Source: Thalia democratica (taxonomy: Eukaryota). From it: a DNA stretch of 64,000 nt. A program made the translations under genes and the position numbers. Positions within the stretch are counted from its first letter, which is position 1. Each line of letters starts with the position of its first letter. Where the stretch lies: positions 59,148,001-59,212,000 of the forward strand of contig OZ241830.1 in the NCBI GenBank assembly GCA_965202585.1. The letters run 5' to 3'. This document shows, piece after piece, positions 1-6,700 of this stretch. The notes below the pieces were generated by a model that saw nothing but the letters and a program-made list of their open reading frames with translations, was not told the origin of the DNA and made no database searches.

Positions 1-79
1 TAACTTTTTAGTACTACATATCTTGTACAAAAATCTAAGACAAAATTCATTCAAAAACATCTTTATTAAAGCAACAAAC

Positions 80-117
80 AAGTAAAATCGATTTCGGCTA
101 ACGCTTTTCAATTACTT
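80..117 (-). ncRNA. Minimal type-I hammerhead-ribozyme-like motif (U3-A8 core variant), PLE1 left arm
   Basis: Exact reverse complement of 3648-3685. Confidence 0.6.
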
Positions 118-337
118 TAGTTAGCAACTAATTTTAAGATTAAATTTTGAGTATATAAATAGTTAGAGGTTACATCAGAAAAATCAATTAACACTAATTA
201 GCATAATTGAGCAAAATTAATCAGACATTCACTATTCATAAATGCATATATAAAAACAGTTTATCAGTAATTTAACTAAGACAAACAACATTAAAATAAA
301 AATAAAATAAAAATAAGCGACAAAATTCAAATAAAAT

Positions 338-1828
338 CTATAACAACTTATAAAGATTAGATTTATAAACGTATTGTTGCTTACACAATTTAGGTTTACA
401 TGTTTTTATAAATAGAGATTCTAAAACACTAAGGTGATAATCGTTACGAGCTTTACTTAAAATTGAAAAGTTACTATCACTATAGTTCTTTGCGCAATCT
501 GAATTGTTTAATAAGTGTTCAGCTATCGCTGATGATCTATTAGATGGTTTTTTTAAACCAGTGTCCATCCATCTTCTGAGGGAATTAAAAATGTGTTGGT
601 CCCTTCTAATATGGAATCTTTGAGACGTTCTGCCAATGTACTCACTGTCACAGTGGCACTTGTACATATAAATAATTTTGCTTTTTTCCTGATCGGCAGT
701 ACGGTCTTTGCAAATTCCATTTAAGGGCTTTCTTGTAGCATGACTGATTCTTAGTTGTACAGAGTTAAAAGTGGAGTTTACAGTGTATTTTACAGTCTTT
801 TCTAGAGCAGATGCTACTTTACCGAGATATGGCAATCTCAAATATACAGGGCATTTTCTAGGACCAAATTTAACCGGTTTTTCAAATTTTGTGATTGTAT
901 TGTTAATTGTCTTTCTGACTATATGCGATGGATAACCAAGAGCTTCAAAAATATTCTTTATTTTATCTAATTCCTCTTCAAACAACTTTTTCGAGCAAAT
1001 CTTGTGTGCTCTGAATACCAAACAAGAGATTAAACCGAGTTTTTGAGATAAAGGGCAGAATGACTGAAATGGAATATATTGACCAGCAAATGTAGGTTTT
1101 CTGTACACAGTGGTAAGCAACTCGGAAGATGTACGCAACAGATGTACATCCAAGAAAGGTAAGCAATTGTCTTTTTCTTTTTCAATAGTAAATTTTAAAT
1201 TTGGGTGTAAATTCGAAATTTTGCTAAATAATTCATCAATGTTATATTCATCATTGTAAGACACAAAAATGTCGTCAACATACCTAATATAGTTTATTGG
1301 TTTTTGATACTTGGAAAAGAGCAATGTTTCAAAGTATCCCACAAAAATGTTGGCTAAAATAGGGCCAAGTGGACTACCCATCGCTACTCCATCTATCTGT
1401 TTATAAATATAAGAATTAAATCTGAATTCAACATTTTTTACTGCCATGTTTAACATACTAAGACAAACATCTTTTGGAATAGAAGGAGCTGTAAGACCAG
1501 AATTGTAAAGTTCATTTAGACATATATTTATAGTTTCATCCACTGGGACATTAGTAAAGAGGCTTTTTATGTCAAAAGAACACATGTTACTTGGTAAAAA
1601 AGCATTTTTTCTTATGACTTCAACGAATGAGAAAGAGTCTTTTATACAGAAAGTGGAATACTTACTGGAAACTGGTTCGAGGATTTTGATTAGAAGCTTT
1701 GAAATTTTATATTGTGCAGAGCTACTCATATCTAAAATAGGTCTTGTTGGAACACCGTCTTTGTGAGTTTTAGGTAGTCCGTACAGTTTCGGACACTGAG
1801 AACCTGAAGGTCTAATAGACTCATACAA
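338..1828 (-). CDS. PLE polyprotein, C-terminal part: reverse transcriptase plus GIY-YIG endonuclease (5'-truncated, frame open)
   Basis: PLE RT motifs PKLYGLPKTHK..PTRPI, SFDIKSLFTNVP, YKQIDGVAMGSPLGP, RYVDDIF, LPFLDV, VYRKPT. The C-terminal GIY-YIG domain reads IIYMYKCHC..YIGRT..R..H, SAIAEHL, LESLFI..KPKL. The frame continues to the palindrome centre (AFQLKLRGWYAKGYISKDL), so the TTG start in the ORF track is not a real start. Confidence 0.92.
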   Translation of the reverse strand: MYESIRPSGSQCPKLYGLPKTHKDGVPTRPILDMSSSAQYKISKLLIKILEPVSSKYSTFCIKDSFSFVEVIRKNAFLPSNMCSFDIKSLFTNVPVDETINICLNELYNSGLTAPSIPKDVCLSMLNMAVKNVEFRFNSYIYKQIDGVAMGSPLGPILANIFVGYFETLLFSKYQKPINYIRYVDDIFVSYNDEYNIDELFSKISNLHPNLKFTIEKEKDNCLPFLDVHLLRTSSELLTTVYRKPTFAGQYIPFQSFCPLSQKLGLISCLVFRAHKICSKKLFEEELDKIKNIFEALGYPSHIVRKTINNTITKFEKPVKFGPRKCPVYLRLPYLGKVASALEKTVKYTVNSTFNSVQLRISHATRKPLNGICKDRTADQEKSKIIYMYKCHCDSEYIGRTSQRFHIRRDQHIFNSLRRWMDTGLKKPSNRSSAIAEHLLNNSDCAKNYSDSNFSILSKARNDYHLSVLESLFIKTCKPKLCKQQYVYKSNLYKLL

Positions 1829-1882
1829 ATCCTTAGAAATATAACCTTTGGCATACCAACCTCTGAGCTTAAGTTGAAAAGC

Positions 1883-3427
1883 TTTTCAACTTAAGCTCAG
1901 AGGTTGGTATGCCAAAGGTTATATTTCTAAGGATTTGTATGAGTCTATTAGACCTTCAGGTTCTCAGTGTCCGAAACTGTACGGACTACCTAAAACTCAC
2001 AAAGACGGTGTTCCAACAAGACCTATTTTAGATATGAGTAGCTCTGCACAATATAAAATTTCAAAGCTTCTAATCAAAATCCTCGAACCAGTTTCCAGTA
2101 AGTATTCCACTTTCTGTGATAAAGACTCTTTCTCATTCGTTGAAGTCATAAGAAAAAATGCTTTTTTACCAAGTAACATGTGTTCTTTTGACATAAAAAG
2201 CCTCTTTACTAATGTCCCAGTGGATGAAACTATAAATATATGTCTAAATGAACTTTACAATTCTGGTCTTACAGCTCCTTCTATTCCAAAAGATGTTTGT
2301 CTTAGTATGTTAAACATGGCAGTAAAAAATGTTGAATTCAGATTTAATTCTTATATTTATAAACAGATAGATGGAGTAGCGATGGGTAGTCCACTTGGCC
2401 CTATTTTAGCCAACATTTTTGTGGGATACTTTGAAACATTGCTCTTTTCCAAGTATCAAAAACCAATAAACTATATTAGGTATGTTGACGACATTTTTGT
2501 GTCTTACAATGATGAATATAACATTGATGAATTATTTAGCAAAATTTCGAATTTACACCCAAATTTAAAATTTACTATTGAAAAAGAAAAAGACAATTGC
2601 TTACCTTTCTTGGATGTACATCTGTTGCGTACATCTTCCGAGTTGCTTACCACTGTGTACAGAAAACCTACATTTGCTGGTCAATATATTCCATTTCAGT
2701 CATTCTGCCCTTTATCTCAAAAACTCGGTTTAATCTCTTGTTTGGTATTCAGAGCACACAAGATTTGCTCGAAAAAGTTGTTTGAAGAGGAATTAGATAA
2801 AATAAAGAATATTTTTGAAGCTCTTGGTTATCCATCGCATATAGTCAGAAAGACAATTAACAATACAATCACAAAATTTGAAAAACCGGTTAAATTTGGT
2901 CCTAGAAAATGCCCTGTATATTTGAGATTGCCATATCTCGGTAAAGTAGCATCTGCTCTAGAAAAGACTGTAAAATACACTGTAAACTCCACTTTTAACT
3001 CTGTACAACTAAGAATCAGTCATGCTACAAGAAAGCCCTTAAATGGAATTTGCAAAGACCGTACTGCCGATCAGGAAAAAAGCAAAATTATTTATATGTA
3101 CAAGTGCCACTGTGACAGTGAGTACATTGGCAGAACGTCTCAAAGATTCCATATTAGAAGGGACCAACACATTTTTAATTCCCTCAGAAGATGGATGGAC
3201 ACTGGTTTAAAAAAAAACCATCTAATAGATCATCAGCGATAGCTGAACACTTATTAAACAATTCAGATTGCGCAAAGAACTATAGTGATAGTAACTTTTC
3301 AATTTTAAGTAAAGCTCGTAACGATTATCACCTTAGTGTTTTAGAATCTCTATTTATAAAAACATGTAAACCTAAATTGTGTAAGCAACAATACGTTTAT
3401 AAATCTAATCTTTATAAGTTGTTATAG
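1883..3427 (+). pseudogene. Mirror copy of the PLE RT-GIY-YIG ORF, frameshifted in an A9 run (3209-3217)
   Basis: ORFs 1935-3242 and 3191-3427 together equal the 496-aa minus-strand protein. A9 instead of A7 shifts the frame, which may be a homopolymer consensus error. Confidence 0.9.
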
Positions 3428-3647
3428 ATTTTATTTGAATTTTGTCGCTTATTTTTATTTTATTTTTATTTTAATGTTGTTTGTCTTAGTTAAATTACTG
3501 ATAAACTGTTTTTATATATGCATTTATGAATAGTGAATGTCTGATTAATTTTGCTCAATTATGCTAATTAGTGTTAATTGATTTTTCTGATGTAACCTCT
3601 AACTATTTATATACTCAAAATTTAATCTTAAAATTAGTTGCTAACTA

Positions 3648-3685
3648 AAGTAATTGAAAAGCGTTAGCCGAAATCGATTTTACTT
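3648..3685 (+). ncRNA. Minimal type-I hammerhead-ribozyme-like motif (U3-A8 core variant), PLE1 right arm
   Basis: AAGTAA-TTGAAAA-GCGTTAGCC-GAAA-TCGA-T-T-TTACTT. It has a perfect 6-bp stem I (AAGTAA/TTACTT), core UUGAAAA in place of CUGANGA, a minimal G-C-closed stem II, GAAA and a palindromic stem III (AAATCGATTT). PLE 3' regions are known to carry minimal hammerheads. Confidence 0.6.
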
Positions 3686-3742
3686 GTTTGTTGCTTTAAT
3701 AAAGATGTTTTTGAATGAATTTTGTCTTAGATTTTTGTACAA

Positions 3743-6700
3743 TTATATGAAAGCATTACTTATATACTACAAGATACTTTTCAAAGTGAAAAATAAATTA
3801 TTAGCATTGAAATATCAGTACTGTGTAAAAGTTTTCACAAATAGTTGAACTGAGCATAAATAATTTTTTAGGTTGTTTTAAAAAATTACAACATGCAAGC
3901 CACAAATTATAGTGAATGGACTGTGGATCAGCTTAAACGCCTTGATATAAATGCTTTATCTGAAGTTGAGAAGCTCAAGTTAAAAAACAGCAGACCAACA
4001 CCAGATATTTCAATTACCCAAGAGTGTACATCAAGAGGTTTGAAGTTTATTTTATGACTAAGCTAAAATTTTGAACTATATGAAAAAATTTAATTATTAT
4101 TTATATATGTGTTTGTTACTTTAAAAAGAAAATATATTATGAGGAAAAAGTTATGATGTTTACAAAGATTATTGCAGTTTTAGTTTAACTAAAATATTAG
4201 CTCTATAAATTAAAGTCTTAGAGCTAGCGTATATTTGAAACATTGTTTCATCCTAATATTTTCTTAGCTGAGATTTTACTAAAGGAGAAATTTTTAGAGG
4301 TTTTTTATATATATACTTTTCAGGTATTTATAGTTTTATCAATGTCAGTTTTTGTAACAACTTTAGCACTCAAATAATGAGAATAAAGAGTTTTTTTTAT
4401 TAATAGAGTGTGTAAATTTATTTTAATTTTCTAAAAAAAAGATATTTTTTTTAATGGTTTTACAGTCATGTTTTTTGTCAATGTCAGATTTTTGTGTTAA
4501 AAAGGTAAGCCTTTCAAGAGAAAGTTCAGCAATGAATATTACAACAAGCACCAATGGCTTTGCGCATGTAAACAGTCCATGGCCCTATACTGTTTTCCGT
4601 GTATTCTGTTTGGAGGTGAAGATGCTTGGACAAAAACTGGTTTTAGAAACTTGTCCAAAATTGCTGCAAGATCTCTATCTCATGCCAAATCTTCCAAGCA
4701 TTTGGACAACATTGTGTCTTTCAACTTCCTAGGTAAAAGTTGCATCCAAATTTATCTAAGTAAAAGTTACCAGGATAGCATTGAAAAACATAATGAAGAA
4801 GTGAGAAAAAACAGAAAAGTACTGAATATTTTAATTGACAGTGTACTTTTTTGTGGCCAACAAGAAATTGCGTTAAGAGGCCACAATGAAACTGAAAATT
4901 CCTTAAATCCTGGTGGCTTTAGGTCTTTGCTTAGATATGCCAGCAAACTAGATAAAGACCTTGAAGGTCATTTAGAAAAAAGCAAAGCATTTTTAGGAGT
5001 GTCTGCCACATTCCAAAATGAGATTCTAGAATGTGTTTTGAAAGTCTATAGAAAAGAAGTTGTCTCACAAGTAGAACAAGCACATTTTATAGCAGTCATT
5101 GCAGACGAGACAACTGATATAGTGTCCAAAATCAGCTTTCAATTGTTGTTAGATACACACACCAAGGAAACGTTGTGGAAAGATTTTGGGGTTTTTTTAG
5201 ACCTAAAAGAGCTAATGCTGATGGTATTTCTGAAGTAATTTTGACTGAGCTAGCCAACATTTTTCAAGGAAATAAAAAGAAATTAATTGCCCAGACGTAT
5301 GATGGTGCATCAGTGATAAAGGGACGAATTGGAGGAGTTCATGTCAAGGTGAAAGAAGTATACCCCAACGCACATTATGTACATTGTGCTGCTCACCAAA
5401 AAAATTTGGTTTTATCAAGAGCTGGCAGTTGCAACAATGAAGCAAGGCTCTTCTTTGCAAAACTTGATCAAATTCCAAACTTTTTTTCCAAATCGCCAGA
5501 GAGAAAACAAGCCATTGAAGTCTCTGTTCCTTCAGGCTCCAGAACACGATGGAATTATAGCTCAAGAACAGTATGCAAAGTTGCCATGAACTTAGATGAA
5601 TTACTCAATGGATTTAAATCAATTGTTAATTCTTCAGATTGCTACGGTTTGCCAACAATTTCTGCTGCTTCAAACTGCATCAAAACTTTAGAAGACAATA
5701 AATTTCTTTTTTGGCTTAATGTATTTGCTGCATTAATGCCTGAAGTAGAAATTTTATACAAGGTAATGCAGAGCACCAGTTTGACAGTTAAAAAGGCAGA
5801 GGACCATATTCGCAATTTTAAAAATTCAGTTGCTAGAATTCGGAACTCAACTATAACAGATCATGAGTCTGTAAACCTCTCTGCTGCTACAAAAGAGGTT
5901 TGCGACAGTGTAAATCTAAATGTGGCAGAAAGGTTCAAGTTTTCTGGCCACTTGCGAATTGCTCAGTTATTTGACGAAAAAAAGTTCAACGCGTACATAT
6001 CTACATTTCCATCAAATTTGGTTGAAGAAGTGAAAACATACTATCCAGAGGTAGAGTCGAAAATATTAGTTAATGAGTTAAATACTTTTTATAAACGAAA
6101 AGAAATGCACAAGTGCGGTCTTGTTAAAATTTTAGCTGACTTGAAAGAAAACAACTTGGATAAATCTTTCACTGAAATCACAAAGCTGTTGAACATACTG
6201 ATAGCAATACCAATGTGTTCAACAGAGGCAGAAAGATCATTTTCAGCTCTAAAAAGAATTAAGACTTACCTAAGAAACACTATGGGCCAGACAAGACTTA
6301 ATTCTTTAAGTGTATTATCAACTGGTCGAGATTTAGTTAGTGAATGTGATGGTTTTAATTCGAAGGTAATAGAAATGTTTGTTGAGAAAAAAGAAAGAAG
6401 GATGCATTTTACTTATAAAGGTAAAAAATAATTTTCTGATTATCATTAACAGAGAGTACATAATTAAGCTTATTTTGTTTTGTGTTTTTAACTTTTAATA
6501 TTTTTAGTTTGCAAATAGTAAACTACTAAAAATATTTTACTTTATTTTTAATTCGCTGTACTGAATGCTACTTTTGACTAAACTTTATATTTTATTTCTT
6601 TTCAGATACATTATATGTTTTTAGTTAGTATTTCATTAATTAGATGTTAATGTTTATAGGTTATTTTAAAACTTTAGTTTTGTTAGTCAACAAATTGTGA

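Follow-up and report, generated by a model that had tools for sequence, protein, structure and literature searches.

The stretch of Thalia democratica DNA analysed here, called the window below, spans 64,000 nucleotides (G000:C6:59148001-59212000), lies in the middle of its contig at 59.15 Mb and opens with a long palindrome. An inverted-repeat search of the window confirmed two arms at 23-1881 and 1882-3742 with a spacer of 0 nt, recovered as the inverted segments 548-1881/1882-3215 and 23-554/3211-3742, and the spacer-less palindrome with arms of about 1.86 kb that had been claimed in the original prediction is therefore real. The symmetry axis falls between 1881 and 1882, within AAGCTT, and the mirror symmetry ends at 23 and 3742; the left and right flanks are unlike. 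Direct alignment of the arms, 1859 and 1861 nt long, yielded exactly two differences, both adjoining T-runs, as the prediction had placed them next to homopolymers. One is a run of seven T at 547-553 in the left arm, mirrored by nine T at 3209-3217 in the right; seven is the family state and is also found in the natural full-length copy L005 (unit position 2238). The other, likewise next to a T-run, is compound and lies at 1643-1645 versus 2118-2120 (TTTTATA versus TTTATCA). The protein of L005 has an isoleucine at this site, so the I-to-D change in the right arm (2118-2120) is the derived state.

The 200 nt spanning the centre form a single predicted hairpin, with a z-score of -34 against shuffled sequences. 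A search of window positions 1-4200 against Rfam returned at the centre only sub-threshold matches to miRNA precursors, on both strands, of the kind that any perfect hairpin yields; no hammerhead ribozyme family was among the Rfam matches for the same interval at E<=1. The 40-mer over the centre occurs nowhere else in the assembly and has no match in the JGI metagenome contigs, a collection that may not include this organism.

Judged by sequence, both arms represent one and the same 5'-truncated Penelope-like element, with a reverse transcriptase and a putative C-terminal GIY-YIG-like domain. As coordinate ruler we used not a consensus but the natural copy L005 (590-3366), which defines a unit of 2777 nt. 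The left arm (23-1881, minus strand) covers unit 910-2777, is 98.8% identical to L005 and has its sense strand on the minus strand of the window, with the element 3' end at its outer, left edge. The right arm (1882-3742, plus strand) is the inverted counterpart of the same truncated copy, again unit 910-2777, and stops exactly at the canonical 3' end, where it adjoins a target-site duplication. Both outer ends of the palindrome are element 3' ends. Only the left arm extends past its canonical 3' end, by a tail at 1-22 (minus strand). Its sequence is that of the opening 22-23 nt of the unit found in tandem or full-length copies: the tail (L023 900-922) matches unit 23-1 at 100%, and the same stretch is seen at L005 590-611. 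The right arm has no tail. The expectation that symmetry would end at the element boundary is borne out, with the nuance that one arm adds these 22 element-derived nucleotides. At the centre, the arms share a native self-complementary AGCT (1880-1883, unit 910-913), a 4-nt overlap that leaves no nucleotide unpaired; the native sequence upstream of unit 910 differs from the mirror image.

The assignment to a Penelope-like reverse transcriptase-endonuclease, also made in the original prediction, is supported by domain matches. The Pfam family RVT_1 matches the arm reading frame with an E-value of 2.5e-13 and the full-length copy with 4.4e-10, and it is matched by 28/28 collinear relatives; look-alikes and homologues carry the domains HTH_animal, DUF8422 and RVT_1. 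The element's own C-terminal 164 residues match nothing in Pfam, NCBIfam or the PDB at E<=10, and a PDB profile search returned nothing for the C-terminal domain. GIY-YIG (PF01541) is matched by 5/28 full-length collinear relatives, the best being P0019 (residues 720-824, E 1.4e-4) at 22.5 bits, under the cut-off of 22.6, and the invariant columns Y738, Y748, G750, R759, H763, H789 and E821 fit the pattern IY...YIG...R...H...E. Partial tandem repetition, which gives rise to pseudo-LTRs (pLTRs), is present as well: in L005, positions 1-589 repeat 2778-3366 (99.8%) and precede a full unit, and L022 and L039 combine a pLTR with tandem full units.

An intact reading frame had been announced for the palindrome as a whole, which is correct for the left arm and wrong for the right. 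The left-arm frame (338-1828, minus strand, 496 residues) corresponds to residues ~352-847 of an 847-residue ORF, spans the reverse transcriptase core and the GIY-YIG-like domain at the C-terminus, and ends at the natural stop. The right-arm frame (1935-3242, plus strand, 435 residues) carries the single I-to-D change and is ended within the endonuclease region by the two additional T of the nine-T run. Since roughly 350 residues at the N-terminus of the 847-residue ORF are missing from each arm, neither can encode the full protein. With the N-terminal third of the ORF absent from both copies, the insertion is dead-on-arrival.

The whole palindrome is bracketed by a 10-bp target-site duplication, TTATATGAAA, whose right copy lies at 3743-3752 and whose left copy lies just beyond the start of the window (G000:C6:59147991-59148000). 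It interrupts one copy of an hAT DNA transposon that is present in the genome many times; to the right of the palindrome this copy occupies 3753-6431 on the plus strand, with ORFs at 4579-5238 and 5175-6431 and matches to DUF4371 (E 2e-7) and Dimer_Tnp_hAT (E 3.7e-9). A first look at the genome gave 613 candidates for this host transposon, and the 40 that were scored match at 85-97% identity. The left flank outside the window continues the same hAT copy; the two flanks are not mirror images, and joined together they make one uninterrupted hAT copy with the 10-bp duplication. In three paralogous uninterrupted hAT copies (L025, L026 and L027, 97.5% identical) the 10-mer is present once. Among Logan contigs of four runs, none of the short contigs listed bridges the palindrome centre. 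Contigs from one run that join the left to the right flank were considered as an allelic empty site and dropped, because they may be paralogous hAT copies; we therefore claim no polymorphism.

Taken as a whole, we read the locus, with a probability of roughly 85%, as a single retrotransposition event of a Penelope-like element into a hAT copy, in which two truncated copies were joined head-to-head. The insertion had been predicted to be recent, and two mutational differences in 1859 nt agree with a single young insertion. For this class of element the structure is not unusual: the same family forms at least 18 further head-to-head pairs in this genome, and the shape is on record in the literature. 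The family has 274 3' ends in the genome, and among the first 100 listed, 14-16 belong to pairs that face outward with under 4 kb between them. We analysed 19 pairs, the present locus and 18 others, using the natural full-length copy as ruler. Like the present locus, the others consist of inverted 5'-truncated copies; target-site duplications of ~9-13 bp surround ~17 of the analysed pairs, and one-sided tails of 19-60 nt recur. The unpaired centres measure 0, 5, 15, 24, 30, 46, 52, 71, 109 and so on up to 1250 nt, half of them being at most 110 nt. The other 18 pairs range from 5 to 1250 nt, and the present locus is the zero-loop end of this continuum.

The truncation points of paired arms are coupled (Spearman rho 0.59). 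They lie at most 10 nt apart in four pairs, against 0.43 expected by random re-pairing (P = 3e-4), and at most 70 nt apart in nine pairs, against 1.7 expected. Several junctions show microhomology of 4-9 nt, and at that of L014 there is filler, 74 nt long and antisense to a dicistronic pre-tRNA, which points to RNA-templated switching at the junction. The side of the tail bears no relation to the longer arm (same side in 6 pairs, opposite in 8), an observation that speaks against a simple polar model. Progressive central deletion was evaluated by comparing loop size with arm divergence, and the correlation was not significant (rho 0.33-0.40, P 0.1-0.23).

From the observed anatomy, duplication, empty paralogous sites, recurrence and arm-length coupling we infer the following order of enzymatic steps. 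The GIY-YIG nuclease of the element would make a staggered cut, 10 bp apart, and DNA copied from the element 3' end would become attached to both target ends. One arm would begin at the canonical start site; the other, begun on a tandem-type transcript some 22 nt downstream of that site, would thereby gain the one-sided tail. The two antisense arms would then be joined where both are 5'-truncated, within the self-complementary AGCT at unit position 910, and filling-in would duplicate the 10-bp target. Most likely the synthesis of one arm depended on the other, the second being templated on the first, either by copy-back (snap-back) or by an inter-cDNA template switch of the reverse transcriptase; the coupled arm lengths (P<=3e-4) favour such a step. 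A switch near the growing 3' end that left no loop would give a spacer-less palindrome.

For the family as a whole, we can suggest only tentatively that head-to-head insertions arise from a reverse transcriptase copying back on its nascent cDNA near the growing end rather than from two independent primings. This reading draws on the coupled arm lengths, on loops skewed to tens of nucleotides down to zero and on the pre-tRNA filler, and under it the present locus would mark the limiting case, a product with no loop at all. A loop of zero nucleotides is sterically awkward in a simple intramolecular hairpin. Arm-length coupling could also have another source, if all pairs were initially perfect palindromes whose centres were lost later; the correlation between loop size and divergence neither supports nor excludes such loss.

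Three other explanations were weighed against a single retrotransposition event with coupled arms. The least probable is an assembly artefact, in the form of either a long read that is a fold-back chimera or a centre that was collapsed. Missed-adapter or duplex reads are known to give perfect palindromes, and both arm differences adjoin homopolymers, typical sites of read errors. However, the mid-contig position excludes a contig-end effect, the right flank carries on the host transposon in the correct orientation with no mirror of the left flank, and at least 18 further loci repeat the architecture with truncation points that differ. Together with the empty paralogous sites, the target-site duplication argues that the palindrome is no fold-back misassembly, as the original prediction had reasoned for a read chimera from the flanks. 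A DNA-level event following the insertion of a single copy, either an inverted duplication by replication fold-back or gene conversion between two older copies, is very improbable. That inverted duplications or misassemblies of this type occur in the assembly is seen at a contrasting locus of the same family (L015, C4:31.6 Mb), where the mirror symmetry of a palindrome continues for over 1.2 kb into either flank. A fold-back duplication would likewise have copied flank here, whereas the symmetry is confined to the element, both outer junctions are canonical 3' ends, and a single 10-bp duplication surrounds the whole at a site uninterrupted in its paralogues.

Alternatively, two independent target-primed reverse transcriptions could have occurred, one per cut strand, each on its own RNA and with unrelated stops, followed by microhomology-mediated end joining. 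In vitro, purified protein of a Penelope-like element can cut either strand and extend it (PMC11167929), junction microhomologies are present, arm length and tail side are unrelated, and the self-complementary AGCT would allow two equal-ended cDNAs to anneal. Yet the truncation points of paired arms are far closer than random re-pairing would place them, half of the pairs have short unpaired centres, and the exact coincidence of the arms at the present locus requires a common stop point. We consider independent priming unlikely.

The palindrome is the usual scar of Penelope-like retrotransposons, a clean and extreme case of a published pattern and not a new kind of structure. The fitting annotation is that of a single Penelope-like insertion, dead-on-arrival and nested in a hAT transposon, and not that of a gene or an assembly error. 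How Penelope-like elements form inverted copies is still called undefined in the literature, and in this family many head-to-head insertions are young and have clean boundaries; their junctions, through coupled arm lengths, microhomology and RNA-derived filler, constrain the ways in which such copies can be built. If copy-back were true, a genome with several hundred young copies would provide a natural data set on the origin of these inverted structures. The loop-free palindrome of 3.7 kb could also serve as a convenient natural case in which to study how stable palindromes are and how hairpin RNA silences in a marine animal; the original prediction had proposed it as a putative fragile site and a source of siRNA/piRNA.

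Copying of a nascent strand is familiar from the snap-back (copy-back) defective genomes of RNA viruses and from hairpin-primed second-strand cDNA synthesis in retroviruses. In such systems the polymerase quits its template and copies its own nascent strand, so that complementary halves result, joined by a minimal turn or directly; the likeness is one of mechanism by analogy and implies no homology. As in LINE-1 twin priming, one event would use both 3' ends of the target and leave an inverted stretch within a single duplication. Twin priming, however, derives its inverted and direct segments from separate, neighbouring regions of one RNA. The two arms at this locus both cover unit 910-2777 and so do not fit priming of the LINE-1 type: the same 3'-terminal 1.86 kb forms each arm, and the element 3' end occurs twice.

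The closest parallels come from Penelope-like elements themselves. For Poseidon PAc of Anolis carolinensis, in vitro work described cleavage and extension of two strands and two internal start sites of reverse transcription, the tail being the stretch between them (PMC11167929), and these start sites match the layout of one tailed and one tailless arm seen here. That study is biochemical and stopped short of joined head-to-head products, whereas the present locus is known from sequence alone. Among genomic copies, one study described inverted head-to-head arrangements with duplications of 9-10 bp and a tail of 31 bp and took palindromes at the junctions as a sign of self-priming (PMC3846280); another described an inverted 5'-truncated copy and a one-sided tail of 30-40 bp (PMC8557442). 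Pen2a_Av of Adineta vaga (PMC3846280), Penelope/Poseidon and Naiad (PMC8557442) share with our family the head-to-head order with 3' ends outward, the 9-10 bp duplication round the whole unit, an optional tail of tens of nucleotides at one end, palindromic or microhomologous inverted junctions, heavy 5' truncation and partial tandems (pLTR) in full-length copies, here L005, L022 and L039. The tail is somewhat different in length, ~22-25 nt here versus 30-40 in the described cases. Those insertions usually combine a longer or full copy with an inverted part that is a short pLTR, whereas the present locus consists of two 1.86-kb arms, equal in extent to the nucleotide and loop-free, so that the entire insertion is a palindrome.

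The spacer-less palindrome at window 23-3742 is a genuine head-to-head insertion of a Penelope-like element (PLE), and the artefact reading is rejected. A repeat search recovered the inverted repeat where the original prediction had placed it, with arms at 23-1881 and 1882-3742 and 0 nt between them. Direct alignment of the arms (1859 versus 1861 nt) leaves 2 differences: a T7 run at 547-553 on the left against T9 at 3209-3217 on the right, and a compound change beside a T-run (1643-1645 versus 2118-2120). In both cases the derived state is on the right, and the left arm matches L005, a full-length copy showing the family state. The halves mirror each other about a point between 1881 and 1882, within an AAGCTT, and the central 200 nt fold into a single hairpin (z = -34); miRNA-like Rfam matches at the centre are expected of any perfect hairpin. 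When searched in the whole assembly, a 40-mer over the centre was found at this locus only.

Beyond the left arm, a tail at window 1-22 repeats without mismatch the nucleotides with which the element unit begins, and the right arm has no tail, finishing at the canonical 3' end. Directly outside the insertion stand two copies of TTATATGAAA, a 10-bp target-site duplication, the left one just left of window position 1 (1491-1500 of L001, the locus stretch with its left flank) and the right one at 3743-3752. On both sides the flanking DNA comes from a single member of a multi-copy hAT DNA transposon family; the palindrome is nested within this copy (window 3753-6431 plus L001 1-1490), whose ORFs at 4579-6431 carry DUF4371 and Dimer_Tnp_hAT. 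With the right flank as query, the genome yielded 613 first-look candidates, and the 40 of them that were scored show 85-97% identity. Three paralogous hAT copies, 97.5% identical, retain the uninterrupted site with a single TTATATGAAA, and the left-flank and right-flank matches on these paralogues overlap by exactly those 10 nt.

A fold-back read chimera would be expected to carry mirrored flank; instead, the flank runs on in its proper orientation, and the whole palindrome sits between the two copies of the duplication. The one-sided tail, the duplication and the uninterrupted paralogues bear out the original prediction on this point, and a contig-end fold-back is excluded because the window, at G000:C6:59148001-59212000, lies in the middle of an 81-Mb contig. 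L015, a locus of the same family, differs in that its symmetry extends >1.2 kb into both flanks. Its palindrome (L015 1144-7552, G000:C4:31596643-31603051) contains a family pair, and its symmetry holds at 100% identity over 2220 nt, then at 93% and 85%; it reflects an inverted segmental duplication or else a fold-back misassembly. The read material consisted of Logan contigs, in which the flanks and the PLE family appear in several marine metagenome studies. None of those listed, at about 100-200 nt each, bridges the palindrome centre, and contigs resembling an allelic empty site may originate from hAT paralogues. The centre 40-mer is absent from JGI metagenome contigs, an absence that says little.

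Each arm contains a long open frame reading from the centre outward, on the left at 338-1828 (minus strand, 496 aa) and on the right at 1935-3242 (plus strand, 435 aa), both with a Pfam RVT_1 match (E about 2e-13). The intact frame claimed earlier holds for the left arm and fails for the right. The family comprises at least 274 3' ends in the 802-Mb genome. As coordinate ruler we used the natural copy L005 (C6:38.2 Mb) and no family consensus; it consists of a 589-nt pseudo-LTR (pLTR) followed by a 2777-nt unit, and its 847-aa ORF begins within the pLTR. Measured against L005, each arm spans unit positions 910-2777; the two represent one 5'-truncated copy, and each is missing ~350 N-terminal residues. 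Since the ORF start (MFLNEF...) falls within the unit's final ~90 nt, each arm carries an outward-facing ORF start and possibly a pLTR promoter. At L001 1405-1611 (window 1-111 plus left flank, minus strand) this start reads outward through the tail into the flank. No hammerhead was found with Rfam at E<=1 in window 3648-3685 or its mirror 80-117, near the element 3' end. Another family locus, L039 (G000:C5:76348700-76358699), has the canonical complex PLE structure, in which a tailed, inverted full-length copy is followed by a pLTR (unit 1682-2777) and this by 2 or more full-length units in tandem.

Relatives at 31-52% identity along the entire length are abundant in marine metagenome assemblies and flatworm genomes. 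A Pfam GIY-YIG match lies at the C-terminus of 5 of 28 such relatives, the best in the protein P0019 (E 1.4e-4 at residues 720-824, short of the curated cut-off by 0.1 bit), and an IY...YIG...R...H...E pattern is compatible with the invariant columns of their alignment. The element's own C-terminus gave no direct database match; as the matches come from relatives only, we file it as a PLE whose endonuclease is supported only indirectly.

Among the first 100 listed 3' ends (of at least 274), 14-16 stand in outward-facing pairs <4 kb apart, and with two segmental arrays set aside pairs account for about a quarter of the independent insertions among the listed ends. These array-like regions, G000:C4:11.87-12.03 Mb and G000:C6:67.51-67.93 Mb, each hold 11 element copies on one strand, spaced roughly 9-18 kb on C4 and often about 33 kb on C6; they look like segmental tandem arrays with one insertion per repeat. 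We analysed 19 pairs, this locus included. All 19 are oriented head to head, about 17 have ~9-13 bp duplications, and tails, where present, measure 19-60 nt and occur at a single end only. The unpaired centres span 0 (this locus), 5, 15, 24, 30, 46, 52, 71, 109, 140, 166 and larger values up to 1250 nt. The positions at which the two arms are truncated are coupled: they fall within 10 nt of each other in 4 pairs against 0.43 expected by random re-pairing (P = 3e-4), and within 70 nt in 9 against 1.7. Several junctions show inverted microhomology of 4-9 nt; at this locus it consists of AGCT, a self-complementary tetranucleotide native to unit 910-913. At the family locus L014 the junction holds a 74-nt filler (L014 4535-4608, G000:C9:49374534-49374607). 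Nucleotides 5-53 of the filler match, in antisense, a stretch composed of the final 8 nt of tRNA-Arg(TCT), a 5-nt spacer and the initial 36 nt of tRNA-Leu. As this arrangement matches tRNA clusters at C10:38.05-38.26 Mb, the filler is probably cDNA of a dicistronic precursor tRNA captured by template switching. Two stretches there (L041 and L042, G000:C10:38.18 and 38.22 Mb) contain repeated Ala-TGC, Glu-TTC, Leu and Arg-TCT units in both orientations, with 5 nt from Arg to Leu.

The anatomy of the locus fits the published PLE model. In work with a purified PLE protein, both target strands were cut and extended, and the tail corresponds to the interval between the protein's two internal RT start sites (PMC11167929). 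A staggered cut would leave 10-nt 3' overhangs, each receiving cDNA of the element's 3' end, and the predicted product (flank, duplication, (tail) antisense arm, sense arm, duplication, flank) has the observed order. What our data add is that the lengths of the two arms are not independent, from which we infer that one arm serves as template for the other close to the growing end, through copy-back or an inter-cDNA switch; this locus would be the loop-free limit of the process. A plain hairpin does not easily accommodate a loop of zero length. Later central deletion of originally perfect palindromes could produce the same coupling; across the analysed pairs, loop size and arm divergence are not significantly related. 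The side of the tail is unrelated to the longer arm (6 versus 8 pairs).

The insertion had been called recent, reasonably so given 2 mutational differences in 1859 nt; homopolymer read errors might even account for both. The family includes several other pairs of similar age. The predicted palindrome instability and hairpin-RNA silencing are plausible in principle. The nearly loop-free pairs L034 (5-nt centre) and L016 (15-nt centre) have reached about 0.5% arm divergence, so this genome does not purge such structures immediately.

The underlying biology is the standard, already published architecture of PLE insertions. An inverted 5'-truncated copy with a one-sided tail is frequent in PLE insertions (PMC8557442), and in Adineta vaga such units have 9-10 bp duplications and a 31-bp tail, with palindromes at the inverted junction that were interpreted as self-priming (PMC3846280). 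The present locus shows this known pattern in its cleanest, most extreme form, and the whole family offers good material for resolving the mechanism of PLE integration.
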